Assembly: GCA_001179505.1 (NCBI GenBank)
Contig: CDMY01000257.1
Span: forward strand, 62,001-126,000
Direction: 5' to 3'
Origin: Vitrella brassicaformis CCMP3155
Lineage: Eukaryota; Protista; Chromerida
Length of the DNA: 64,000 nt
The notes under the pieces were generated by a model that was not told the origin of the DNA, searched no databases, and saw only the letters and a list, made by a program, of their open reading frames with translations. This document shows, piece by piece, positions 1 through 50,700 of the stretch. A program made the translations under genes and the position numbers. Each line of letters opens with the position of its first letter. The first letter of the stretch is position 1.

Positions 1-3000
1 GGATCCAGCGATTACGGCCTGATGGCTGTCTCGTCATTTGAGCCCATCTTACGTCAGGAAAGCGTCGTCCGGCTTGAGGAAATCTTCATCGGCCCTCAAG
101 ACAAATGGCCTTCTGGCCAGGCATTGAATCTGCACGCCTGACAACAGACAGGTGGTGACCTTGCCTGTGAGTACTTGATGCAATACTGTTTGTCGTACCT
201 TCTTTCGGAATGTCGCAGACTTCTCTCAAGTGACCGCTTACTCTCGACTGGAAATCTATGCCGCCGCGGCCTTGCCTCGTATACATACGAAACCAACTGT
301 CGACGAATGTGGTGTTGTCCTCGGAATCCGCATTGTCAACCGACAGTAAGGGAAAGCTGAATAGTGACGCGTTAACGAATTCTCCATCCTCCAACTTGAC
401 AAGTGCCGTTCCATTCTTCCGGTAGGTCAGTGTCTTTGGGGGCAGCAAGCAGCTCTCAGCAGAGGTATTGCTGGGAGGAGAAATAATGCTGTACTGCATG
501 GTGCCGACAGGGGCACTTGACGTGAAGATCTGCACAAAGCAGTCAGCAGACATGCCCTCATTGATGCAGTGATGAGTGCGTAGCCGCATTACCAGTTCAG
601 GCGTGATTGACTTCGTGTCGTTGGTTCCAGCTCGGTTGAAGAAGTCTCTGATGGTGGGGAGATACGACGTAAGAGCCGGATAACTACCCTCTTCTCCCTG
701 AGGCTCAAAACTCAAGCCGCCGGCAAGAGTGCCTATATGATTGAGAGACACAAGCCGAGCACACAAAAGCGTACACGTACTCCTCTGAATGCGTCAAAGC
801 GTACCTTCAACGAACATCAGAGTGCCTTCGCACTCTTCGGGCGACACCTGGCGCACCGTCCCCTTGAAGTCAACATTGGCGAAGCCAACCTGTGGCTGGT
901 CATCATCCCCTGGGGCTCTCAGTGCGATCCGTCCATCCAGAGCCTCGACATCATATCTGATCCGCACTTGCAAGTCGGCGTCGTCTCCCTCGCAGCTGAA
1001 GGCTTGTACGAAGGCCTCTGTCCCACTGCCCCTTTCCCCCCGAGCCCGGAATATCCAAAGACAAGCGGTACTGTTAGGGTCCACTCCTGTGTCATTGACA
1101 TCTTCCGCGGGAAGGTCGGCAGCGGTACTGTCAGGGTCCACTCTTGGTTTGAAGTCGGTCATGCGGTAGCTTGATGGCTGGGCTGTACTGGAGGCATTCA
1201 GGACAATCTCAGGACATGCCTCGACTGACACAAGCAAAAGATATGACGAAGCAACAACAGAAAGCGACAGCAAGTCAGCTGTGAGTCATTCTGATTGCTT
1301 ACAGCATTCAAACCCAATCACACAGCGATTAGGCAGGACATCCCCGTCTCCCATGGCAAAATCGCTGAACCTCTCGGTGCAGTTGTTGATCGTTGGATCC
1401 TCACGTGTCGAGAACATCTCGACCGAAGCGTTGATCCGCTGCTCAGAGCCTCTCGTTATCCCCTTGCAAGTATGATTTCCATCGGGAAAGACGAAAACAC
1501 ACGTGTCAGCTCCAAGGAGTCCTTCGTTGGGCGCAAGAGCAACACTCACAACCTCGCCAGTTAAGCTGGGATCAACGAGGGCTTGAGCAGATAGGCCGTC
1601 ATCGCCAGGTTCAAAGTCGACGGGAAGGTTTGGGAGCCTTAATCCTCGGCAATTGGCCAAGACTGCAGACACACGCATCAACGGCAGGACAGTCAACCGT
1701 CTTTGCGTCTCAGCCAAGAGACAAGAAGAGAGAAACATGCTTGTCACGCGCCTAGCTGGTGTCATTGCCATGTACCTTCTCTTCCATCGATCAGATTTCC
1801 CAGCTGGCCCTTCACACAGCGGCAGCACACAGACAGACATATGTGTGGCTGCTTCTTGAGAATGAACGGAGTACCTTCAGAATCAGGTCAAGTGACACGC
1901 CCGTCTCCGCGCTGAAGAGGTCGAACGATCGAGGCCCCTTTGTATCGGACACATTTGAACATAGCACAGACTTATTTCCCACAGGGAACTTGACGTCTAA
2001 GTCCAAATCGTCCAAACACGACACGTCGTCATCCGTGATGACAAAGAATCTGTCTCCGATTGCGGCGCTGCTGAAAGACAGGTCTGGCGACTGCTCCGGC
2101 TTGTACAGGGGGGAGAAGATGGTCGGCAGGACCTCTCCTAGAAGGGCACGGCTGAAATCCTCGCGAAGAATTACAGATGTTCCAGCTTGTTCTGGACGGA
2201 CCTCAGTCACGCTGTCCTCACTCATATCGGCCGCACTCACACATATCTCACTGCACTCCCGAAATGCATCTTGATTGTCGAAAGCGAACTGACTGGCCTC
2301 CAGGGGGTTCTGACGATGTGAAGGGAAGCGAGACATATACGTGCATATGAGGTCCCCCTATCTACCAGTGCCGTACCTTTCGGATAATTTCGCCAGACGT
2401 CGTGTCCCTTCCATATCCTGAGGCAGCCAGTGCAAGGATGCCGCCCGCCTCGGTCTCGCCAGATGTCACTGAGAACGCTCGCTGGTTGAGCAGGACATCA
2501 CATTCATCAGGCACATCATCGGGGAATGTCAGGAGGCCGAGACTCGTGTTGGCTGAGGGCGAGAGAATGCCGATCGCCCGTGCAGTGACAAGATCGTCCT
2601 GTGTCTCGTTGCCGATGATGAGAATCCGCTGGGTCTGGTTGTACTCGAATTGCTGAGCGATGAGAGACTCCGACTCGTCCACGAAACCCGTCAAGGTGAC
2701 CTCGATCTGCGCCTCGATTCCCTCGCACACCGGGTTGCTGGCGTTCTCGACGACCAGCACGCCCTGAACTGTGGCAACTGCAGGCTGGAGGGCATTGCCG
2801 GCTCGATTGGAGCAGAGGCCGGTGTCGGGGCAGGTGAACTGGAGGGTGACGCTAACGCCCTCTGTCGTGTTGCACGACAGGTCCACAAAGAAGTCACCAA
2901 GTCCATTATCATCGTCACTCTTGCCCTGGATCCTCATGCAGCTCGACACGTTGGCGCCGGTGTTGTTGACTGTCGGCAGATAGGCGTCAGAGCTCACGTC

Positions 3001-3917
3001 TTCGAACAAATAAGTGCCGGGCACCAACTGAGCGAACGTCGCCTCTTGCGGAACAGGGGGCTCTTCGTTTGGCTTGACGCTCTGCTCTCGTGGGTTGGGC
3101 CCAATGTCTTCCCTTCTCTCGACGACGGGCAGGCTGCCCGCACAGTCAAAGGGCACGGCGAAGCGGTTGACGGCATTGAAGCACGGATCCAGCTCGGCCG
3201 GGAAACACAGAGACGATGGCTGGCCGCTGGCGACGCCCCTCGTTAAGCTGACATCGCCGCGCGAGAAGTTGGCCACGTCGCCGAACAGACCCACTTCCTC
3301 CTCGATGCAGTAGCAGAAGCGGGAGTCGCTCGTGCGGGCACAGATGGGCTTGTCCGACGGGCAACTGACAGACAGGCGCACGAAATTACGGTGCCATACT
3401 CATTGAGCAGTTCCTACCTTCCCAGTGCCGCAGTGCCCAGATCGGTGATGTTTGTGCCATTGACGCCGCTCGGCTCGCCACAGATAATGGACTGGTTGCC
3501 GCTGGTCGCAGTGACATTGCCGAAAGTATCCGAGTCCTCATTGTTCAGCGCATCTGTCTGTTGCTCCTTGAGTAGTCTTCTTGTGGTATTCTCATAGAAG
3601 CACTGGCCGAAGTTGCCCAGAGTGATGTTGTCGACGATGGGCAGCAGCGCATTGGCCTCGCACGCCGCGGCGATCTCACCGCGCGGGAGGACGGCTGAAG
3701 AAGCGAAAGGCATTCATATCCACTTGTTGTTCACGTGCCCTCTGTTGTGCTTACCCGGCTGGCAGTCTGCGTTTGTTTCGGTCGGCTGTCCGTCGTCGTC
3801 TGTTCTTGTGTTGTTGGTCAGACAGGCCGTCGTGAACTGAGCTACAGCACCCTTCCTCTCCCATTGGCTCAGCAGAACGGACAGCACCGCAGCCACAAGC
3901 CAAAAGGCTCTCCGCAT
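1..3917 (-). CDS. Large secreted acidic Cys-containing glycoprotein, copy A (multi-exon; 3' end probably runs off the window start)
   Basis: ATG at 3917 gives a signal-like leader MRRAFWLVAAVLSVLLSQWERKGAVA|QFTT. In-phase GT-AG introns checked at 3754-3695, 3417-3365 and 2376-2310 join ORF-track segments 3414-3713, 2362-3381 and 1812-2336. Further exons lie in 1286-1840, 794-1273 and 86-766, then GVQIQCLARRPFVLRADEDFLKPDDAFL with a GTAAG donor near 51, conserved in copy B. Many N-x-S/T sequons. About 1,100 aa in the window. No family recognised. Confidence 0.85.
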
Positions 3918-3981
3918 AAAATCGTGATCACAAGAATTTACTTCAGCCGTTGCCACACTGTACAATGCAAAGGAAACAAGA
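3918..3981. promoter_or_regulatory. Very short divergent intergenic region shared by large gene A and peptide A, with conserved motifs
   Basis: CAAGAATTTAC, CAGCCGTTG and CTGTACAAT occur in the same order in 9662-9724. The first two also occur upstream of copy C (12261-12303). Confidence 0.55.
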
Positions 3982-4361
3982 ATGAGGCTCTTCCTTTTTC
4001 TCTTCGTTTCCTCCGTCCTTCGGGCAGCTGGAGAGATGAGTGGTCTGCCGCAGACGCGTCGGGAGGGCGCGCCGGACCGTCGTTCAATCTTGGTTTCGTC
4101 TGCACAGGAGAGCTCCGGAGGACGTGCTGCTGAAGACGCCGCCCACCACGGCGCCCTTCTCGGCCAAGATGGTGGGCAGAGTACAACACCTACCATATTG
4201 CAACCCGACGATTGCGTGCATCAGATACCCTCCCTTCTCGTCGCCTGCAATTCGATGATGAGCCCAGGCCGATGCAGTTTCAAGGCATCTGCTGCACCGA
4301 TTGTATTCCTCTATACGGCACAAGTGCTTGTTACGACGGTAACTGTATTGAAAGTTGCTGA
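3982..4361 (+). CDS. Small secreted six-cysteine peptide precursor, copy A (108 aa; exons 3982-4171, 4225-4361)
   Basis: MRLFLFLFVSSVLRAAG leader. A phase-1 intron (4172-4224, GT...CATCAG) gives ...LGQD-DTLPSRRLQFDDEPRPMQFQGICCTDCIPLYGTSACYDGNCIESC*. Intron position, phase and Cys framework match the copies at 9725 and 12304. Confidence 0.85.
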
Positions 4362-5452
4362 GGACAAGAGAGCCAGGCACGCCTTTAGGTCAGTTTCAGT
4401 GACCCGCGTTGCGGAAAGATTCGCGTGTAGCATGATTAGTGTGTGACCAATGTGTACAGCAGTCTCTATGGCTTATTGCACCACATTTTTCCTGGTGCTT
4501 TGTCATTGGGAAACCTTTTGTCATTGGGAAACTTTTTGTTGTGACTGACTGGGTGGGACGAACGGACGGGAAGGGACCTTGCAAAATACTGAGCAGATTC
4601 GGTGTGACGCTGTGGCCCTCATCCAGCAGTATAGTTACTAGCACTGCTGCTGGTTTTGTGGACCGTGCTCCGTGAGCCGTCACTTTCTTCAGTGGATGAC
4701 TTTCTCTAGTGTCCATGGGGCGAGACAATAACATGAGGGGTTGGAGGGCATCTCACGTCCCTTGTCGCGGACATGCAAAGATCTACATGTTCGTGCATGC
4801 ATCAATTCGTGGAAGCAATGGGTGGCCCCCATGTACAGACAAGAAAGATATGAGTGACAGGGGCCATTCATGTGGACACGCAAAGTGGGACAGACATGCA
4901 CCGCGGCTGTGAATGTGACAGCGCTGCAGACTTGGTTACATGATGCGTCCATGGCTGGATGATTTCAAATGCCAACACCGCAATAAGTCCAACCACCCTT
5001 GATTGACACATCCATGCACACAACGAGACGAAATGCGTCCCAGCCAACACATGCACGCACACGACGAGACTGCGGTCTCCAACGCACACCGACACATTGA
5101 ATGGCGTGTCAAACACGCCCACACAATCTGATGTACAGTCGGTGGACACGCAGACTGACAAATACGCCACTGTGGTGCACCTATGCAGTGCCCATGGCAG
5201 ACAAAGAGACAGTCATCAACTGCACACACTCACACACACAGGGAGAAAGAAAATGACGCCGTCAGAGGAATCACCACAATGTGTCTCTTCCACTTGCGTA
5301 CCTTCCAACAGGCGACAGGCGCGTATGTCTTCAGCCATACGTATCGCAGATAATGCGATCACAGAAAATAAGAAAAATCCCTCCATTGACGAGAGAAAAA
5401 ATGGGGACATGACTGTCGAATGTGGTCTTGCCCACTTCCCCTTTCGTCACTT

Positions 5453-8400
5453 TCACGATGATATCTCGCCGTCTTCCGTCTGCCCAGCAGGCGTCGGTCT
5501 CTGTCGCTCACCCGGGATAAAACAGAGGGTCAGAACAGGGCATAGCTGCTCAAGTCTGTGGGTCTTGCCATCGTCGGTGGGGGCCTCGACAAAGAGGGGA
5601 ATCGTCCGCACAATAAAGCCCCTAGGCCTGTCAAAAGCCTCTACTTTGCGCTCGACATCAGCAAGCGAGCAGCTGAGATTGAACCCGTCTGGCGACTGGA
5701 GCCGCAAAGCGGGATCAACGCCGTTTGGTGTCTGCACTTGGGCGACAGAGCTTGATGGACGGAGACACATACGGAACGGGAGCACACGGCAAAAGGACAG
5801 TGCTGATGTTCTCGCCATTTATGCGATATCTTACCTCAATTGGAAATCGTCGTCCGGCTTGAGGACAGTTTGATTGGCCTCCAGGACAAATGGCTGTCGG
5901 GGGAGACATTGGATCTGCATGCCTGATCGACCGAAAGGCACCCTTGCGTGTGAGCACGTAACGGATTACAACGTGTCGTACCTTTCTCAATATCACATAC
6001 TTCGCCCAACTTGCCACCTATTCTCGACCAAAAGTCTCCGCCGCGGCCTCGCCTCCCCGCAAACATTCGAACCTCGCTGTTGACAAGCATGGTGTCGTCC
6101 TCGGGTCCCGAATTGCCAATCGACAGAAAGGGAATGTTGAATGAAGCATCATTGGTTTCATCCTCCGGAGGTCCATACTTCCGGTGGGTCAGTCTCGCTG
6201 GGGGCTGCAAGCAGCTCTGAGGGGTATCGTCAGGGGCAGAAACAACGTCGTACTGCATAGAGCCGAACGAGGCACTTGACGTCCAGACCTGCATAAAACA
6301 GTCACTAGACATGCCCTCCTTGCTAATGTATACGTGTGGCAGTATTACTAGTTCAGGCAGGATCGTGTCATCGACTCCAGCTTCGAAAACGTCCCTAATC
6401 GTGAGGAGATACGTCCGACTCGAAACCGGACCAAGGGGCTCTTCTCCCTGAGGCTCAAAACCCAAGACGCCAGCAAGAGTGCCTGTGTGAAGCGACACAA
6501 GCCGGACACAGAGAGGCGTACACGTACTTCTCTGAATGCGTCAAAGCGTACCTTCAACGAACATCAAAACCCCTTCGCAGTCTGGGGGCCAAACCTGGCG
6601 CACCGTCCCCTTAAAGTCAACATTGGCGAAGCCAATTTCGGGCTCCTCGTCAAGGCGTCCATCGAGAGAGAGCGGGATCTGTCCATCCAGAGCCTCGACG
6701 TCGTATCTGATCCGCACTTGCAGGCCAGCCCCTTCCTCGTCCGGGTCGCAGCTGAAAAGGGCCCGAAAGTCCTCTGCACCTGGAGTGTTTTCTGTCTCGA
6801 GGCAGTAACTGACATCTGTGCCATTGACATTTTCCGCAGGAGGGTCAGTCAGGAAATAGCTCGATGGCTGGGCGGTCAATGGGGCGGTTAAGTTGACCTC
6901 AGGACATGCCTCAACTGACACAAAGCAAGAGAGACGAGGAAGCACGAACATGATGACACACCCAACGCGCCAGTGACTGAGCTGTGACTTATTCTGATTG
7001 CTTACAGCATTCAAAGCCAATCACACAGCGATTAGGCAGAAAATCCCCGTCCCCCATGGCAAAATCTCTGAGCCTCTCCCTGTACCTCTCGGTGCAGCTC
7101 TTGTTTGTTGGATCATTAGCAGTCGAGAAGATCTCGACAGAAGCGTTGATCCGCTGCTCAGAGCCTGTCGTTATCCCCTTGCAAGTATGATTTCCATCGG
7201 GAACGATGAAAACACACGTGTCATCACCAAGGAGTCCTTCGTTGGGAGCAAGAGCAACACTAACAACCTCGCCAAATGAGGTGGCATTAACGAGGGGTCG
7301 AGCATATAGGCCGTCATCTTCAGGTTCTAAGTCGACGGGGAGGTTTGGGAGCCTCAGTCCTCGGCAATTGGCCAAGACTGCAAACACACGCATCAATTGC
7401 AAAACGACCAGCCATCTCCATCTTCACCCCTCAGCCAAGAGAACTCAAGAAAGAAACACACATGCTTGTCACGCCACTGAGCGACTGCCTGGTGCCCGTA
7501 CCTTCTCTTCCATCGATCAGATTTCCCAGCTGGCCCTTCACACAGCGGCAGCACACAGACAGACACGTGTGTGTGGTGTGGCTCGAGAATGACTGAAGTA
7601 CCTTCAGAATCAAATCAAGCGACACGCCTGTCTCCGCGTTGAAGAGGTCGAACGATCGAGCATCAGACGCATTTGTACACAGAATGGACACACGGACTTG
7701 AGGGAACCTGACGGGCAAGTCTAACTCGTCCAAACACGAAAAGTCGTTTTCCGTGATGACAAAGAATCTGTCTCCGATTGCGGCGCTGCTGAAGGATAGG
7801 TCTGGCGACAGAGATTCTGGCTTGTAAAGGGGGGAGAAGATGGTCGGCAGGAGCTCTCCTTCGAGGGTACGGCTGAAATCCTCGCGAAGAATAAAAAATG
7901 ACGGAGCTTGTTCTGAACGGACGCCAGTAACATTGTCGTCACTCATATTCATCTCGTTCACACATATCTCACTGCACTCCCGGAATGCATCTCGATTATC
8001 GATAGCGAACTGACTGGCCTCCAGGGGGTTCTGACGATGTGAAGGGAAGCGAGACATACACGTGTATATGAGCTTCCCTTATCTAACAGTGCACTGACCT
8101 TTCGGAAAATTTCGTCAGATGCCGTGTTTCTTGCATATCCTGAGGCAGCCAGTGCAAGGATGCCGCCCGCCGCGGTCTCGCCAGATGTCACTGAGAACGC
8201 TCGCTGGTTGAGCAGGACATCACAATCACCAGGCACGTCATCGGGGAATGTCAGGAGGCCGAGACTCGTGTTGGCCGCGGGCGAGAGAATGCCGACAGCC
8301 CGTGCAGTGACAAGATCGTCCTGTGTCTCGTTGCCGATGATGAGAATCCGCTGGGTCTGGTTGTACTCGAACTGCTGGGCAATAAGAGACTCCGATTCGT

Positions 8401-9661
8401 CCACAAAGCCCGTCAAGGTGACTTCGATCTGCGCCTCAATTTCTTCGCATGCCGGGTTGCTGGCCTTCTCGACTTGCAGCACGCCTTGGATGGTGGCGAC
8501 GGCCGGTATCAGTTCGTTGCCAGTGCGATTCGAGCACAGGCCGGTATCGGGGCAGGTGAACTGGAGGGTCACGCTGACGCCCTCTGTCGTGTTGCACGAG
8601 AGGTCTAGGAAGAAGTCATCGAGCCCATTGCTGTCGTTCTTCTTGCCCTGAATCCTCATGCAGCTCGACACATTGCCAGTGCCCACGTTCTCGATGGTCT
8701 GCAAATAGGCGTCAGAGGGCACGTCTTCGAACAGGTAAGTGCCGGGCACCAGCTGGGCGAACGTCGATTCTTGCGGCACGGGAGGCGGGTCGTTTGGCTT
8801 GACGCTCTGCTCTCGTGGGTTGGGCCCAATGTCTTCCCTTCTCTCGACGACGGGCAGGCTGCCCGCACAGTCGAAGGGCACAGCGAAGCGGTTGACGGCA
8901 TTGAAGCACGGATCCAGCTCGGCCGGGAAACACAGGGACGATGGCTGGCCGCTGGCGACGCCCCTGACGAGGCTGACATCGCCGCGCGAGAAGTTGGCCA
9001 CCTCACCGAACAGACCAATGCTCTCCTCGATGCAGTAGCAGAAGCGGGAGTCGCTCGTGCGGGCACAGATGGGCTTGTCCGACGGACAACTGACAGTCAG
9101 GCACACACGGAAGAATGATGGTGCCATCACATGAGACGAGCAGTCCGTACCTTCCCAGTGCCGCAGTGCCGAGGGCCGCCGCCGTGATGTTGCCATCTTC
9201 CACGACACTGGGCTCTCCACAGATAATGGACTGATTCTCTCCTGATGCGCTCACGTCGCCGGCGGTCTCCTCATCGGTGGTCAGGGCATCTGTCTGTTGC
9301 TTCTTGAGCTCTTCCTGGGCGTTATCCTCATAGAAGCACTGGCCGAAGTTGCCGAGGTCGGGGTCGTCGACGATGGGCAGCAGCTCATTGGCCGCACAAC
9401 TCGAATACATGATCTCATCACCATCTTCGCCAGGGATCACGACTGAAGAAGCGAAAGCCATTCACAACAGCTTGTTGTTCACGTGCCTCTGTTGTGCTTA
9501 CTTGGCTGGCAGTCTGCGTTTGTTTCGGTCGGCCGTTCGTCGTCGTCTGTTCTGTTGTTGTTGCTCAGACAGGCCGTCGTGAACTGAGCCACAGTACCCC
9601 TCCTCGCCCATTGACTCAGCAGAACGGAAAGCAACGCCACAAGACGGAGGGCTCGCCGCAT
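5453..9661 (-). CDS. Large secreted acidic Cys-containing glycoprotein, copy B (tandem paralog of copy A; exact 3' end uncertain, could extend to about 4.9-5.3 kb)
   Basis: ATG at 9661: MRRALRLVALLSVLLSQWARRGTVA|QFTT. Exon-by-exon collinear with copy A (ORF-track segments 9003-9461, 7958-9220, 7431-8057, 6989-7402, 6541-7020, 5836-6498). A GTAAG donor near 5833 splices in phase into SSVAQVQTPNGVDPALRLQSPDGFNLSC... (5453-5818). Confidence 0.85.
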
Positions 9662-9724
9662 ACGAAAAAGCGCAACGCCCAAGAATTTACGTACATCACA
9701 GCCGTTGAGCTGTACAATAGCAAG
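9662..9724. promoter_or_regulatory. Very short divergent intergenic region shared by large gene B and peptide B
   Basis: 63 bp between the two ATGs, with the same conserved motif trio as 3918-3981. Confidence 0.55.
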
Positions 9725-10245
9725 ATGAGGCTGTTGGTCGTCTGCTTCGCTCTGTCCGCGCTCCGTGCGCGTTCCGGGTTGAATGCCCCATCACGTCAGG
9801 ACCCCCCGGCCCCCCCTCCGTCCGCGGCGGCGTCAGTGCAGGAAACCGCAGCAGTGCATCCGTTCACCGACGAGACCGACCGCGGTCGAGGCGCCACCGG
9901 TCAAAATGGTGAGCAGAGAACGACACAGAACCGGCACTGCTTCTGTGGACGTCTGGGTGCATGATGCGTCGTACAGATCGCCCTTTTCTCCGTCGTACGC
10001 AGTCCGACTCCGACAAGAAGGCCAAGCCAGAGCAGGATTATGACGAGGTCTGCTGCGATGATTGTGTGTATTACGCCCGAGTCAGTTTATGCGAATTGTA
10101 CTGCGATGATGACTTTTGCTGATGACGAGACATCCGCCTTCAGGCCAGGTTGTAGTGCCGCGTTGCGCAGAGATGTATGTACAGCCGTCTCTGTGACCTC
10201 CTGTGCTTCGTCACTGGTGAACTTTTTGTGTCGTGACTGACTGGG
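9676..10245 (+). repeat. Recent segmental duplication; partner at about 12261-12800
   Basis: Shared sequence starts at CGCCCAAGAATTTACGTACATCACAGCCGTTGAGCTGT (9676 and 12261). Near-identical through exon 1 and the intron. Homologous with indels in the 3' flank (e.g. CTTCAGGCCAGGTTGTAGTGCCGCGTT in both). Confidence 0.95.
9725..10122 (+). CDS. Small secreted six-cysteine peptide precursor, copy B (109 aa; exons 9725-9908, 9977-10122)
   Basis: MRLLVVCFALSALRA leader. Phase-1 intron 9909-9976 (GTGAGC...GTACAG). Spliced C-terminus: DRPFLRRTQSDSDKKAKPEQDYDEVCCDDCVYYARVSLCELYCDDDFC*. Confidence 0.88.
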
Positions 10246-10742
10246 GCACACACACACGGGCAGCGACATTGTCTCACCCATGACTGTCTCACCCATGAAC
10301 ACGCAGCTTGTTTCGCCGAAAGCACGCATTAATCTCTACTAGACATCTACTTATGGACAGCGCAGTGGAGAAAGACGTGTATAGGTCGTCGACGTCAAGT
10401 GTGGGCACACAGTGACAACTGCCGTGCACCGCGTGACCCCTCACTAATGCGTCAATCAACGGATGCCGTCGGTCAGCCGACGAAGACACGCTCTCGAGCG
10501 TGTCGATGTGCTGCTTGCTTATGTGACAATCAAATCGCACACACAACAGCCAACGGACACGCAGAAATGCAAGCGCTCGCCGTCGGCGTGCTGTTCTGTA
10601 TACTCACACATGGGGCAATCCACCAGAGGGGTGTTCCACTGTCCGAAGCACGTGTCGCAAAAGGCTGACATCGACACAACAACACGACATACACGGACGC
10701 AGAAACAGACAAGTGGTCGACACGTGGTGGTGGCTGACCCAC

Positions 10743-12197
10743 CTAAGTGTTTGCAGAAGGAGTTGGGTTGGCTGCCCGACAGTCCATCGTCTGACGAGCG
10801 TGTGGCCCTATGTTTGCTGGCTGGCTCCGTCTCCCCTTAGCGGCCAGACCATCGATGATCGCCTCACGCCGCGCTACCTGAGAGACACACCACCGACAGA
10901 CCCGTCCAGCGGTGCAGACACGCCATCACTCGACCACTGTGTGCGCGTGCGCGTCCGCACCTCCGCCTGCAGTCGACTCTTGTCCTCGGCGAGGCGGCTG
11001 CTCTCCCCCGTGGCCTCCCTCACCTCTTCCACGAGCTTCTCATTCATCCCCCTCTCCCTCTCTACGTCGCTCTCCAGCTCCTTCACCCGCCCAATCAGCA
11101 TGTCGGTCGCCCTCACCCGAAGGGTCTCGTACACACGGGCAGTCTTGTGCGTTGTCTTGTCTTGTCTTGTCCTGTCTTATCTTGTCCTGTGCTGTTTTGT
11201 CGGTCGGGGGTGGCTCACGGGTCAGGGTGGTTGGCTTTGAGTTCCTTGATCTGCTCTTCAGCGTCTACCAGGCGCTTCTCGGCGCCATGCTTCTCCTCCA
11301 AACACCTGAACCAAGCATAGCACATGGATAGACAGAAATGTGCCCAGACACACGCAGGCGAGCGCACCTGTTGTATTTGTCGTTGATGTCGGTCGCGTAT
11401 TGCATCAGCCGCTCACTATCCCGGATCTGCTGCTTCAGCTGCGACTGGCTCGTCGCGCAGTAGCCAGACAAATCGCCACAATTCCATACAGACAGCACAC
11501 AGCACAACAGATGCCGACAAGTCACGAGCTGGTGCCTGTGTGGGGTGAGGGAGGTAGCTGTCGATTCGGTCTTTGAGCTCCTGTATCTCCCTCTGCTTCT
11601 CGCGCAGCTTCCGGCTCAGCTGCAGGTTCTCGTCCCTCAGCTCGACATGCTCCATCAGGTTGCGACTGTCCTCCGTGCGCATAGGTACTAGTAGGGGGTA
11701 AGGAATGGGCTCACTGAACACACACAAACATCACACAAGGCATACACACGCCACCCAGCCCATCGCGTTTTGCCGTGTTTGTTACCTGACAGCGGCCTCT
11801 TCCATCGAGCTATCGCCAGACAGGTTATCCAACAGCAGACTGCTACCGCGCCCCACCGCCACGTCACCGCTACCGTCACACCCGTTCTCGCCCTCCCGCC
11901 CCTGCTCCTCCCACCTTGCCTCTCCCTCCTCTCTCCCTGCGCTTCTCTTCCTCCATACTCGCTATTCGTCTCGTCCTGTGCCGCCACAGACGCCTCTTCC
12001 TGCTCGCGCGAGCTGCTGCTGCTGCCGTTGAGCAGCGCCTCACGCAGCGAGAGGGACTGTGCAGCAGGTGGGATCCCATTGTTGCAGCCTTCTTGTTCTC
12101 TGATTGAGCCGAAACAGGCTCCCAGCCGCCCCGCACCCGAAGGGGGCGTCTCACGGTCGTTGGCCGAGGCCGGCATGCTGCTGCTGGAAAGCCGCAA
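10743..12197 (-). CDS. Multi-exon coiled-coil protein of unknown function
   Basis: Exons encode heptad-rich E/K/R/L segments: NLMEHVELRDENLQLSRKLREKQREIQELKDRID, SQSQLKQQIRDSERLMQY, LEEKHGAEKRLVDAEEQIKELK, LIGRVKELESDVERERGMNEKLVEEVRE, RLQAE|VARREAIIDGL. They are separated by GT-AG introns. Start is 12197 or 12176. Confidence 0.7.
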
Positions 12198-12303
12198 CCG
12201 GTTTCGGGCAAGCAGGAGACAAGCAAAAGTGCTTCAATGAACAAGAGAGCTCCTCGGTGCCGCCCAAGAATTTACGTACATCACAGCCGTTGAGCTGTGC
12301 AAG

Positions 12304-12704
12304 ATGAGGCTGTTGGTCGTCTGCTTCGCTCTGTCCGCGCTCCGTGCGCGTTCCGGGTTGAGTGCCCCATCACGTCAGGACCCCCCGGCCCCCCCTCCGT
12401 CCGCGGCGGCGTCAGTGCAGGAAACCGCAGCAGTGCATCCGTTCACCGACGAGACCGACCGCGGTCGAGGCGCCACCGGTCAAAATGGTGAGCAGAGAAC
12501 GACACAGAACCGGCACTGCTTCTGTGGACGTCTGGGTGCATGATGCGTCGTACAGATCGCCCTCTTCTCCGTCGCACGCAGTCTGACTCCGACAAGAAGA
12601 CCAAGCCAGAGCAGGATTATGACGAGGTCTGCTGCGATGATTGTTTTTATTACAGAAATGTTCGTGACTGTTACGATCAGTGCAATGATGACTTTTGCCG
12701 ATGA
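12304..12704 (+). CDS. Small secreted six-cysteine peptide precursor, copy C (110 aa; exons 12304-12487, 12556-12704), orphan copy
   Basis: Exon 1 differs from copy B by one base (N20S) and the 68-bp intron is identical. Spliced C-terminus: DRPLLRRTQSDSDKKTKPEQDYDEVCCDDCFYYRNVRDCYDQCNDDFCR*. Confidence 0.88.
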
Positions 12705-39934: not shown

Positions 39935-42090
39935 ATGGCCCTTTCTCAGCTCTCAGAGAAGTCTCCGCTGTCGGGTGGCTCCCTCAGCAAGGGAGACTCC
40001 CGAGGCGACATCCCCGACCTGGTTGAGGCTGCGGAGACCACGGAGGCCTTCGTCCCCTGCCTGGCCAAGGTGTTGGACCACCTCATTCAGATGTCCCAGG
40101 AGAACATCGGACAGGTGGGTGGGTGGCCACGGGAGGCAGGCCGAGACAGCATGTGGGAGGGGGGGCGGAGGAAGGGGATGGACGTGGCCGTGTGTGTGGC
40201 GGGTGGTGCAGGTGACTCGGTTCCATGCGGTGCGGCCTCCTGCGATTTCGACGCATGACTATCTGGCGAGGTGGGTGTACACGACGGCAGGCAGCCGCCT
40301 GGTGGCACGCGTCTCGCGTGCTGCGGGTGGTCCACGGCCTTCCTCTGTGTGTGTGGTGTATTTGGTTCAGGATTGCCAAGTACTTCAACTGCAGCCCTGA
40401 GTGTTTCGTGTTATCGCTCGTGTACATCGACCGGATTGTCAAACTGCACACCGACTTCACCGTCAACAAACTCAACATACACAGGTCGGGGGGCGCACTC
40501 ACACACAGAGGACACCCCTTCCCCTCCCCTCTTCCTGTCTGTCTCATGTGTGCGCCATCCATCCCCTGCTGCTGCCTTGGTTGCGTGTGATGTGATAGGT
40601 TGTTGCTGACGAGTGTGTTGATGGCGGTCAAGTATTTCGACGACCACTACTACAGCAACGCCTACTACGCCCGAGTTGGGGGCGTCAAGACCGAGGAGAT
40701 GAACCACCTCGAGTCGCACTTCCTCATGCTAGTCAAGTTCCAGCTGTACGTCACGCCACACGAATACGACCAGTACCGCAAAAACGTCCTCGCAGCCGTA
40801 CACGGAATGGTAACCACCACCAGCACCACACCAACAACCATACCCACCCCTCTCACTTGTCGGTCTCTCCTTCAGGAGCCGTCTAGCGTTAGTTCGCCGA
40901 CGGCCGTGTCGGCGTCTCCGTCGAGCCTGCTGACGACGCCCAGCGATGAGTCGGTGGCCAACCCGCCCATGCACCCCATGGCCGCCACCCTGCCCATCGT
41001 CAGCACCGCCGCGCCGTTCCCGCCAACCATGCCTTCCTTCTCCGACTCGGACAGCGACAGCACCCCGCTTCACGGCAATGGTGGCAGTGGCCGTAGCGGC
41101 AGTGGTGTCGACAGACGGAGCAGCAAGGACCTGGCGGGCACCTTTGGGATCGCCCTGCTGCAGCACCAGCAGCGCGTTGAGTGCGGGAGTGTGAGTGTAG
41201 GGGGGCTGCCGACCGTGTCCAGCACCCATTGCTACGCGCCATCGCAGTGTGAGAGTTCCAGCCTGTCGCTGCACTCGTCGAGCAGCTACAGCATGTCGCT
41301 GCACACCCTCGCCATCGAGAGGGGACTCAGCGACGTGGCCACCATCCACTCCACGGGCTCGCCCCAGTCCACCGCATGCCCCCCACACATGTGGTCGGCC
41401 AACCCGGTGCTCTCAGCTTCGTCGCCCGCCGTCGCCCAGTCGTTCAACAACTGGTCGGCGCCGGCCCCCCCGCCCCCGCCGCACCATGGTTGCCCTTCCC
41501 TGCCCCTGTACGCAGCATCGGCTAGCAGCGATCGTTGTGTGTCGGTGAGTCCGATAGCGCCCCCACCTCCCCCGCCCCCGCCCCCGTCAGAGGGCAGCCG
41601 CAGCACGCGTGACGGTAGCGGCGACAGCCTGGCCGACTGGTACGACTGCGGTGCCGCCCTCAAGGGGCCGGAGCGAGTGCGGTCGGGTGGGTGTGCTGGT
41701 GCTGGTGCTGGTGTGGGTGGGGGCCTGCTGCCCACGCCGCCCCTCAGTTTTCGCAAGTGTGAGAGGGGCAGCAGTGTCGGCGGAGGATTCGCCCACTCCC
41801 ACTCGTCCCAGGCCATGCAGCAGCAGCAGCAGCAGCAGCAGCCCCCACCGCCGCCCTTCCCGCCACCCGCACACAGCGGCCACCATCAGCGGAGCTTCAG
41901 CAGCTTCCGGGGCGGCGTGCAGGGTTGCGGGTTCGTGCCGCCCCCTCCGCCCCCGTACGACAAGGACCATGCGAGTGGCGGTGGTGTGGGGCACATGTCG
42001 ATGATGATGATGCAGATGCACCACAAGGTGCCGATCGCCAAGGCGCATGCTGACTACCACCCCAAGATCCAGGTCGTCAGCAACTACTGA
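39935..42090 (+). CDS. PHO80/P(U)-type cyclin with a long S/P/Q-rich low-complexity C-terminal tail
   Basis: Cyclin box across exons: FHAVRPPAISTHDYLAR|IAKYFNCSPECFVLSLVYIDR...NIHR|LLLTSVLMAVKYFDDHYYSNAYYARVGGVKTEEMNHLE. Confidence 0.92.
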
Positions 42091-48000: not shown

Positions 48001-50700
48001 AGAGTCTCCGGCTCGCTCACCCCATCCAGCTACTCACTTGCCCACTTACCTACCCACTTATCCACCTGTTGTGCCCACCAACAGTGTACCATAGAAGCCC
48101 CCTCCCTCCTCCTAAGGCTACCTGCCTGTCTGTCGGTTGGCTACCTTCCCCCTGAGTGAGTGCGTCCATCTACAAGTGTATCTATCTACCTTCGCCCATT
48201 CATTCGTCCATTCGTCCGTTGATTTCATCATTGCATCATATCACTACTGGGCGGTCTCGTGTAAAGGGGAGGGAGGGGGGCATTGTATGTATCTATGTGT
48301 GTGTGTTCGTATGTCTCGATCGTCTGTAATCATGGCTTACGAGTCGCTATCCCTCTGGCTCTCTCGGCCTGCCTGCCTGCCTTTTTGACCACGCGGCATC
48401 TAACCCTCACTGGTAAATGGCTGACAGTCGGATCGAGGAAGCCACACTGACATTGCGTAACAAACATGGGTGGGTGGGTGGCCATCAGACAGCGTGTGGG
48501 TGTTTTTTCGCTGCACGAACCAACGAACACACGCTGTCGTGTGTCTCGCGTCCCGTGTCCTGACGCCCCTGCCGGGCCCGTCTGCCACTTGTGCGGCGGG
48601 TGTCTTTCATCTCGTCTCCGCACCAGTGCCAGCCAGGCCCTGGTGGTGCATCAGGAACACGTCAGCAAGACTCGCTGCACGCGCGCTGCGTTTTTGCTCT
48701 CGGCTGGACGGTCCACACACGAATGAACGGATGGCTCATCGATTGCCTTGTCACTCAGCTCTTGTCCCAAACCACGGCACACAACTTACTTTCAGAGAGG
48801 GAGCCAGTGAGACCGGTAGACAGACAGGTGGTGGGGACTCAGCGAGCATCATTATTTTTCTGTACAGTATGGCCTCTCCTCCCCCCCCCGGGCGCTTCTT
48901 GACGACTTCACCAGCTAGCTACCCGACTCACATGCTACCGGTAGACAGACAGACAGACAGACCAAACCATACCACGTCGGTGATGCTGTTCCTCGGTCGG
49001 GTGGCTTGGTGGGTCGCAAAGGTCTGCTGGGGCGGGCTGGGCTCAAGTGGTGGGACGGCCGACAGAGGCCCTGACTGAATGGCTGGGTGTGGGTGTGGGG
49101 CGCTGGAGGGTTGGGTGTTAAATACAGGGACGTAGAAGGACAGACAGACAGACAGAGACTGCAGCGATCGATGCCGCTGACATTGCATTGCATTGCACTG
49201 CATTGCATGGCACTCATCGCGGCGCGGCCCTCACTCATTCACTCATTCATTGACTCATTCATTCATTTGTATTTTTCTCCGCAGCCATCCGGTCAGCTCA
49301 TGACGATGGCTGCATTCGTCCATCCGTCCGTGGCGTAGGCGTAGCCCTTTTTCAATATGGCCTGCTTGACTGGCTGGCTGCTTGGCTGTCTCGCCATTCC
49401 CTTCCAACCGGTGGGTCAGCCTGTGTGAATGGAATGTGCATGTGTGTGTATGGTCCGTCCAGAGTCACCCAAGGGCGGGAGACACGAACGAGCTGGCTGT
49501 GGGCGGGTGGGAAATGGATGTCTGAATGACTCGTGGATGGGGGCAGTGGGGATGGACGGACGTCATCCACACATCCACACCGACACACATTCGGGAGAGG
49601 GAGGCAGGGAGGGAGGGACAATTCGCCGATGGATGGATGGATGGATGGCTGGATGGGGCAGTTTGTGACAGACAGGCATTGCNNNNNNNNNNNNNNNNNN
49701 NNNNNNNNNNNNNNNNNNNNNNNNNNNNNNNNNNNNNNNNNNNNNNNNNNNNNNNNNNNNNNNNNNNNNNNNNNNNNNNNNNNNNNNNNNNNNNNNNNNN
49801 NNNNNNNNNNNNNNNNNNNNNNNNNNNNNNNNNNNNNNNNNNNNNNNNNNNNNNNNNNNNNNNNNNNNNNNNNNNNNNNNNNNNNNNNNNNNNNNNNNNN
49901 NNNNNNNNNNNNNNNNNNNNNNNNNNNNNNNNNNNNNNNNNNNNNNNNNNNNNNNNNNNNNNNNNNNNNNNNNNNNNNNNNNTGTGTGGGTGTTTTTGGT
50001 AGAGGTATAGGTAGATCCCCCTCTAACCTCGCTTGTTCGATGCTGCTACTCTGTCTGTCTCCCTTACTCGACTTCGTCCTGGTGTACCATAGTGCCCCTC
50101 ACTCGCCTCGCCTACCTTGGTTTCTGCTTGGTGTACAGCCAGCCACTTCGTCTCTTATCTATCTCGTTTCGCCCCGTCCCCCTCTCTGTCAATATAACGG
50201 CATCTTCCTCTGTGTGGTGTGGTAGTCTCGTGACTGCTGCTGCTGCTGCCTTCGTGATGGGACCACTGACTTGTGGCTGGCTGAGAGGGCGGGTGGCTAT
50301 TGCTGTTGCTGCTGGCTGGTGGGTGTGGGATCGGCTGATCTGTGGTGTTGTTCGGACTTGTCTGCTAAGCTGCCAGCCTCCCAACTGTTGCATTTTTGTG
50401 CAGACTTGCATACAATACACACATACCCACATACATACATAAATGTGAGCAGAGTGTTTTGAAGTGCTAATCTGACTGACTAGTGGCTTGACTGGCCGAA
50501 TGAATGCTTGGTAGGGAGCCTACTGTGGCCGGCCGACTGACTGACTGACTGACTGGGCGGTTTGGCGTCGATCTAATTGGTATCTCTGCGGTGGGTTGCC
50601 TGCTCTCTCCCACACACACTACACTCCATTGTGGGTGGATGGGATGGATGGAGTGGGGGATGACTTATGTATGAATGAATGACTTGGATCCGTCCGTGTG
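42100..50700. repeat. About 8.5 kb of microsatellite-rich, apparently non-coding DNA
   Basis: Dense short runs of (GGAT)n, (GTCT)n/(CAGA)n, (GCCT)n, (CTGA)n, (GT)n, (CCGT)n. No ORF with coding-type codon bias or a recognisable motif. Confidence 0.8.
49683..49982. other. Assembly gap (300 N)
   Basis: Run of N bases. Confidence 1.

Follow-up and report, generated by a model that had tools for sequence, protein, structure and literature searches.

A family of spliced genes for putatively secreted six-cysteine peptides, so far found only in Vitrella brassicaformis and repeatedly paired head-to-head with large orphan genes

In chromerids, the photosynthetic sister lineage of Apicomplexa, we know of no description of small secreted disulfide-rich peptides, a type of molecule that is otherwise familiar. 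A 64-kb stretch of contig C257 of Vitrella brassicaformis CCMP3155, hereafter called the window, raises the question of whether three short genes, A, B and C, which come into view only after removal of an intron, form a genuine family of such peptides and what these peptides might do. We addressed this question by analyzing the three loci and by searching the Vitrella genome (72.7 Mb, 1064 contigs). The results show that A and B are spliced as predicted, that a fourth gene, D, belongs to the same family and is transcribed, and that A, B and D each lie head-to-head with a copy of a large gene. As a whole explanation we favor, with moderate confidence, a Vitrella-specific two-exon family that would deliver a secreted, disulfide-stapled module, most likely a partner or ligand of the large neighbor.

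The first-pass annotation had stated that a phase-1 intron must be removed to reveal A, B and C, and that their open frames otherwise run on into unrelated tails. Translation reproduced the three models exactly, and the read-through tails as well as the previously given C-terminal sequences were found as described. All three genes lie on the plus strand, and all three introns are of the GT..AG type and in phase 1. The spliced model of gene A (ATG at 3982, stop at 4359-4361) translates into 108 amino acids (aa). Its exon 1 (3982-4171) encodes a signal-like N-terminus (MRLFLFLFVSSVL...) and the start of a spacer, and ends one base into a codon, as judged from translation, hydropathy and alignment with B, C and D. 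The intron of 53 nt (4172-4224) is followed by exon 2 (4225-4361), where translation and pattern search revealed the spacer DTLPSRRLQF..., the sequence ICC-x2-C-x8-C-x4-C-x3-C and the stop. Gene B (ATG at 9725, stop at 10120-10122, 109 aa in the translated spliced model) was delineated by the same means: exon 1 (9725-9908) encodes a signal-like segment and a Pro/Ala-rich spacer, the intron (9909-9976) is 68 nt long, and exon 2 (9977-10122) encodes the spacer RPFLRRTQ..., the sequence VCC-x2-C-x8-C-x3-C-x4-C and the stop. For gene C (ATG at 12304, stop at 12702-12704, 110 aa in the translated spliced model), comparison with B showed that exon 1 (12304-12487) differs by one base, which changes one amino acid, and that the 68-nt intron (12488-12555), the splicing of which is predicted, differs at 0 of 68 positions. 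In the six-Cys module encoded by exon 2 of C (12556-12704), the loops have diverged strongly, and one additional Arg precedes the stop. The module of A thus has the form CC-x2-C-x8-C-x4-C-x3-C and that of B and C the form CC-x2-C-x8-C-x3-C-x4-C, with a length of 23-25 residues. Its last Cys directly precedes the stop in A and B, and lies one residue before the stop in C, as had been noted from the outset. A regular expression for this framework, applied to the six frames of the window, found A, B and C plus one unrelated match on the minus strand at 41057-41125. The latter match (..CCSVCRHHCRYGHCHHCREAGC..) lies inside an Arg/His/Ala-rich frame and is probably due to chance.

Public sequence runs allowed us to inspect the predicted junctions. 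Seven of eight runs contain part of the B locus, and four runs were mapped on window positions 4080-10079. In two of these, X3 and X6, the exons, introns and intergenic DNA were all covered and no joints were present, so these runs behave as DNA. In X1 and X7, which stem from two different studies, the intergenic stretch was absent. Canonical joints were found for genes of either orientation, namely GT..AG in those on the plus strand and CT..AC in the neighbor on the minus strand, and these runs therefore behave as transcript assemblies. Both the 4171/4225 joint of gene A, which skips 53 nt, and the 9908/9977 joint of gene B, which skips 68 nt, were present in X1 and also in X7. Neither joint was found in the DNA-like runs X3 and X6, the contigs of which cover the introns. 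The junctions that the first-pass annotation had proposed for A and B are thereby confirmed in two studies, and in RNA-like runs only. The RNA contigs that map to B carry the B letters at the sites that separate B from C. An extra contig in X1 and X7 matches the 3' untranslated region (UTR) of A with few differences and then continues as unlike sequence. The printed consensus of this contig is identical to exon 2 of D, which shows that D is transcribed too. In the 3' UTR, A and D are near-identical and differ by one 2-nt deletion and two substitutions (window 4403-4469). At 4453-4469, A and the convergent large gene come together with their 3' ends, and here the contigs are broken in all runs.

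Gene D was identified by a genome search with exon 2 of A. It is located at G000:C257:14643-14995 on the minus strand, about 50 kb from A-C on the same contig. Its product has 93 aa and contains the module VCC-x2-C-x8-C-x4-C-x2-C, and its phase-1 intron, 71 nt long, interrupts the gene at the position seen in A-C. When the genome was searched with profiles of the exon-1 and exon-2 alignments, exactly four members were returned, A-D, all of them on C257. The raw cysteine pattern was swamped genome-wide by TGC/CTG repeats, and a stricter pattern search of the genome yielded nothing but simple repeats beyond A-D. The family had been described as hidden, which is correct for A, B and C, none of which was found in protein collections by word search or by a profile search of 1.84 billion proteins. 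It is not correct for D, which is public as CEL97833.1 / A0A0G4ELX4, an 'uncharacterized' protein of 75 aa with identical splicing. However, the public model of D (L024 1492-1844, minus strand) starts at Met19, and it therefore omits the 18-residue signal-like N-terminus that is conserved with A, B and C. Taken together, the A-D family is largely missing from the public protein set and is so far known only from Vitrella.

Various searches for relatives gave a consistent picture. No Pfam family matched either exon of the peptides at E-values up to 10, a word search of proteins gave no match for the peptide family, and a profile of the four modules returned only D from 1.84 billion representative proteins. 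A metagenome scan produced 48 pattern matches, 0 of which were confirmed, the ESM Atlas gave no usable match for D, and no record was found when contigs encoding D were sought. By our estimate, a Cys-rich profile of 44 positions needs about 45 bits to reach an E-value of 0.001 in a library of 1.84 billion proteins, so that relatives sharing just the cysteines are invisible to such a profile search. In addition, protein databases exclude unannotated small genes of other protists. Within this scope, the Pfam, word and profile searches gave no known larger family of which A, B and C could be fragments. Since the searches that were run gave neither a family nor a structure or homologue beyond Vitrella, the earlier suggestion of a possibly undescribed family is a fair reading.

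The layout of the precursors suggests how they may be used. Their N-termini consist of MRL, 10-11 hydrophobic residues and RA-x-G or RA. Hydropathy over 10 residues peaks there at 2.6-2.8, and sites compatible with the (-3,-1) pattern follow residues 15-17. Signal peptides had been claimed for A, B and C, and by this heuristic of hydropathy and (-3,-1) sites, which is not a dedicated predictor, their N-termini are indeed signal-like. The spacers are 55-70 aa long, mildly acidic, rich in Pro, Ala and Ser in B and C, and poorly conserved between A/D and B/C, the two pairs being 30% identical. The description of the spacer as variable was thus appropriate. The dibasic RR site that was said to follow the intron is present in A (RRLQ) and in B and C (RRTQ), but it does not extend to the whole family, as D has RHLQ in the context PPRHL; the only motif common to A-D after the intron is R-[RH]-[LT]-Q. 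In the spacer of A (window 4225-4300) the pro motif apparently occurs twice, as DD-TLPSRRLQF and then as DD-EPRPMQF, and it occurs once in D, which suggests a small internal duplication in A. The modules are acidic to neutral, with a pI of 4.05-5.8 and a net charge of -5 to 0; with these values and no Pfam match, the likeness to defensins that had been proposed is not borne out as membership of that group. Within the module, C1-x3-C3 and C4-x3-C5 can be read as a twin CX3C arrangement, which suggests a stapled helix-loop-helix that leaves C2 and C6 for a third bond.

In the mechanism that we propose, exon 1 would provide a signal peptide for the endoplasmic reticulum together with a portion of a disordered spacer, and exon 2, which follows the phase-1 intron conserved in A-D, would encode R-[RH]-[LT]-Q, more spacer and the six-Cys module. 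The precursor would enter the secretory pathway, where the six Cys would form three internal disulfides, giving the stapled helix-loop-helix with its third bridge. The spacer would probably be removed, and the small stable module would be released or displayed outside the cell. That the product is secreted and disulfide-bonded is likely.

The genomic setting of the peptide genes provides a further clue. By tblastx, three paralogous copies of a large gene were found head-to-head with A, B and D. Copy 1 (1-3917, minus strand) has its start, MRRAFWLVAAVLSVLLSQW, at 3917 and is truncated by the beginning of the window. Copy 2 (4453-9661, minus strand) has its start codon at 9661 and consists of multiple exons, with CT..AC introns in the RNA contigs. 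The D-side copy is located at G000:C257:15078-19770 on the plus strand. The start codons of the small and large genes are 64 bp apart at A (3918-3981), 63 bp at B (9662-9724) and 82 bp at D. The gap at A contains the conserved CAAGAATTTAC, the gap at B has the same conserved elements, and the element that is truly common to these gaps of 63-82 bp is CAAGAATTTAC...CAGCCGTTG...CTGTACA. A 'conserved upstream box' at 3861-3881 and 9608-9628 was rejected as a promoter, because it represents the reverse strand of the signal-peptide codons (..SVLLSQW..) of the neighboring gene: when read on that strand, a start codon is followed by MRRAFWLVAAVLSVLLSQW..., the signal-like start of the large minus-strand gene.

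Such close starts, and the fact that C has no partner, could also be taken to mean that the small genes are no functional family at all, and that the bidirectional promoter of the large genes yields by-product transcripts in which open frames occur by chance. This interpretation is at odds with the conservation of the signal-like segment, the intron position and phase, the six Cys and the placement of the stop between A/D and B/C in spite of their low overall identity. It is equally at odds with the precise splicing and with five Cys columns that are invariant over nine diverged relatives (see below). We therefore regard the by-product interpretation as scarcely credible, and the A, B, C, D gene family as almost certainly real.

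The large protein is rich in Cys and N-x-S/T sites, and would be a secreted orphan. A Pfam search with ten pieces of the large partner identified no domain, the same search with 17 partner paralogues gave only sub-threshold lectin and Fn3 noise, and the ESM Atlas gave no usable match for the large partner. At least 16 first exons of the large family are detectable, along with some 20 matches to its body, on about a dozen contigs. A word search, which covers proteins of 190-607 aa, matched only proteins from Vitrella. One fragment of the large family is named 'Thyroglobulin type-1 domain-containing' in UniRef. In a further copy, L041 (G000:C257:2319-3972), the main exon is interrupted by two in-frame stops and the divergent side is devoid of a small gene; this cassette is probably decaying. 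The window also includes an assembly gap of 300 N at 49683-49982.

For every first exon of the large family we inspected 1.4 kb on the divergent side. DNA similarity to A-D was detected in these stretches at A, B and D only. However, a different small gene was found divergent to at least six other large copies, namely L040 (C257:~136.8-137.1k), L045 and L047 (C257:~126.9-128.8k), L046 (C770:~65.9-66.1k), L048 (C297:~125.5-125.9k), L049 (C770:~82.8-83.5k) and probably L050 (C770:~76.7-77.2k). These extra genes have an MRFLWF-type signal-like exon and then a C-terminal Cys-rich exon with the module (C)C-x2/3-C-x4..13-C-x3-C-x2/3-C, which ends 0-2 residues from the stop. Upon alignment of nine modules, five Cys columns were invariant, and the x8 loop proved to be peculiar to the A-D branch, with loops of x4 to x13 in the relatives. 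In L048 the module comes directly after DDAPLRRL, and one candidate acceptor is in phase 1 in the Asp codon just before this motif, which is a near-equivalent intron position; the comparable junctions are DD-TLPSRRL in A and DD-DFPPRHL in D. L049 contains several cores with DDxPxRRL linkers between them. Over the whole genome the strict DDxPxRRL motif shows no enrichment, with 31 matches as compared to 50 in the control. From these alignments A-D appear as one branch of a wider Vitrella set of the same design with variable loops, and the pairing of peptide and large gene appears to have been kept through deep divergence of the peptides.

A large partner that is rich in Cys and N-x-S/T sites, and Pro/Ala/Ser-rich spacers in B and C, would also be compatible with a structural component of the wall or matrix. 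The protein of about 90 aa would then remain uncleaved in the wall of the cyst or sporangium, where its C-terminal cystine module would attach it to the large glycoprotein by docking or cross-linking. The spacer is short and poorly conserved for such a role, however, and the location of the L048 module right after RRL, as well as the linkers between the L049 cores, look like the release of small peptides. Accordingly, we consider a structural role distinctly improbable.

Genes B and C permit a view on the recent evolution of the module. The duplication that gave rise to C comprises about 585 bp of B and starts 43-49 bp upstream of the ATG, at the upstream stretch that C shares with B (CAAGAATTTAC...; 12262-12303, plus strand). 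Because the duplicated segment starts just upstream of the ATG, C is without a large partner. In the prepro codons, the proportions of synonymous (pS) and non-synonymous (pN) differences between B and C are 0.030 and 0.016, respectively, as compared to 0.38 and 0.29 in the module. The divergence is concentrated in a stretch of about 45 nt of the mature peptide, where synonymous and non-synonymous sites are both raised and pN/pS is about 0.76. This ratio and the raised synonymous sites do not bear out positive selection as an explanation. We read B and C as a mosaic, in which either the flanks were homogenized or the stretch of the module was replaced.

A conserved leader next to a highly divergent mature stretch, as seen in B and C, together with the prepro layout, might point to a stand-alone defence or allelopathic peptide (an antimicrobial, a protease inhibitor or a toxin), with the large gene linked to it by duplication history only. 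The twin-CX3C-like spacing, which recalls plant alpha-hairpinins (PMC7191063), and the multi-core relative L049 would fit this idea as well. On the other hand, the variable stretch has a pN/pS below rather than above 1, and the acidic to neutral modules are unlike most membrane-active antimicrobial peptides. Moreover, the pairing recurs with very diverged peptides on other contigs, which is poorly explained by duplication history. A purely defensive role thus seems improbable.

The interpretation that we favor instead builds on the divergent arrangement of each ancestral copy of the peptide gene with a large orphan paralogue: the peptide would be a co-expressed extracellular partner or ligand of the neighboring large protein. 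Joint action of the two proteins is a tentative proposal, and any specific role taken singly, be it signal, defence or wall, has a low probability. Several observations weigh against the proposal. C is partnerless and its expression is a prediction. The cassettes of A, B and D are duplicates of each other, and their pairing does therefore not amount to three independent observations. Six large copies (L041, L044 and L051-L054) have no small gene within 1.4 kb on their divergent side, and the intron models of the extra small genes are ambiguous, sequence-based candidates. No processing site occurs in all four members, as the dibasic site fails in D and the R-x-L site fails in B and C. The signal peptide is a heuristic assignment, and secretion, cleavage and disulfides are predictions from sequence. 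The AlphaFold model of the module is weak, with a predicted local distance difference test (pLDDT) score of 61 and only two short helices at residues 27-36 of exon 2, and that of the large partner, with a pLDDT of 30, is useless.

What emerges is an expressed and mostly unannotated family, so far confined to Vitrella, with a fixed Cys scaffold and very variable loops. Its repeated head-to-head pairing at 63-82 bp gives rise to a concrete hypothesis of a two-component extracellular system, and the members with R-x-L/RRL motifs may help to explore what processing of the plasmepsin V / ASP5 type was used for prior to the rise of parasitism. Should the peptides be ordinary wall components, the value of the present findings would lie mainly in better annotation.

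Among known systems, the water-borne mating and growth pheromones of Euplotes deserve particular attention, since an analogy with them had been drawn at the outset. These pheromones are acidic and Cys-rich, and they are made as pre-pro precursors in which the leader is conserved and the mature part varies (PMC9542385). The mature part is C-terminal, as in the small Vitrella precursors. In the PDB, the four-sequence profile matched En-6 of Euplotes nobilii (E 0.28), the unrelated hyperglycemic-hormone-like peptide 5xs1 (E 0.27) and nothing else. D alone matched only the pheromone En-1 (E 1.3), and A, B and C, each searched alone, matched nothing at E-values up to 10. Locally, the two pheromones share CC-[STN]-[DS]-C-[IYF]-x3-G-x2-A-C with A and D, that is, an identical CC-x2-C-x8-C spacing with Gly and Ala in the same places, and En-1 also ends in Cys (PMC4030967). 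True homology nevertheless seems very unlikely. The E-values are not significant, and with the nine-sequence profile, in which the x8 loop is a feature of one branch only, the Euplotes matches disappeared from the PDB search and a twin-CX3C small Tim came first at E 0.3. The Euplotes cluster motif C-x1-3-CC-x2-3-C (PMC9229436) is absent from A-D, which have CC-x2-C with no Cys in the preceding three residues. The bonds of En-1 are 11-37, 23-33 and 30-52 (PMC4030967), and the three matched Cys are thus bonded to Cys of the N-terminal part that the Vitrella module lacks. Euplotes pheromones are three-helix bundles of 32-109 aa, whereas the Vitrella module has its six Cys packed together in 23-25 aa and is too short for three helices. 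PF06360 had no match in the Vitrella genome, although the control was equally silent. Furthermore, the pheromones are alleles of one mat locus, and the Vitrella peptides are paralogues paired with a large gene. The resemblance is best kept as an analogy.

Conotoxin precursors had likewise been invoked. The order CC-C-C-C-C of framework IV and the signal-pro-mature layout are indeed shared, and so is the sharp change in recent duplicates, here B and C, from a leader and intron that are conserved to a mature stretch that has diverged. Membership is not supported, as no conotoxin family was matched in Pfam and none appeared among the PDB matches, both at E-values up to 10. The loop lengths are also different, the host is a unicellular alga, and the synonymous sites of B and C diverge together with the non-synonymous ones.

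Plant alpha-hairpinins are antimicrobial or trypsin-inhibiting peptides that are cut from multi-module precursors (PMC7191063). Like B, C and most of the Vitrella relatives, if C1..C3 of these is counted as CX3C, they have two CX3C spacings around a variable loop and are made from precursors with a signal peptide, and the series of cores in L049 resembles their multi-module design. They have four Cys instead of six, however, and they are basic where the Vitrella modules are acidic. In A and D the second motif is CX4C, the two groups share no sequence similarity, and the Vitrella family has no vicilin-type domain. Alpha-hairpinins fold into an antiparallel helix-loop-helix with the bonds C1-C4 and C2-C3, and a likeness in fold is suggested by the spacing only.

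With respect to processing, the apicomplexan protease ASP5 is known to cleave RRL sites behind their Leu, and plasmepsin V cuts behind R-x-L (PMC4764566). RRL in A and RHL in D, both shortly after the signal-like segment, and DDxPxRRL before the cores of L048 and L049 resemble these PEXEL/TEXEL substrates. B and C, in contrast, have RRT, which is not acceptable at P1 to the known enzymes, and cleavage of this kind is putative.

The genomic arrangement itself resembles that of the SCR/SP11 and SRK genes of Brassica, a tightly linked pair for a small Cys-rich ligand and a large receptor. By analogy, the gene for a small, variable secreted Cys-rich peptide would in Vitrella lie beside that for a large glycoprotein, either secreted or in the membrane, and the two would have multiplied and diversified together. 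The differences are that the Vitrella partner has no recognizable domain and that the Vitrella copies are paralogues within one genome rather than alleles. A more far-reaching, and distinctly speculative, interpretation is that, in this free-living relative of the apicomplexan parasites, the peptides and their partners form a multiplied and co-diversifying recognition system for cell-cell signalling, mating or self/non-self discrimination, in which the peptides would be cut at R-x-L/RRL by an ancestor of the export protease of the parasites. If true, this would reveal a pre-parasitic function of PEXEL/TEXEL-type processing and the first peptide signalling system of a chromerid.

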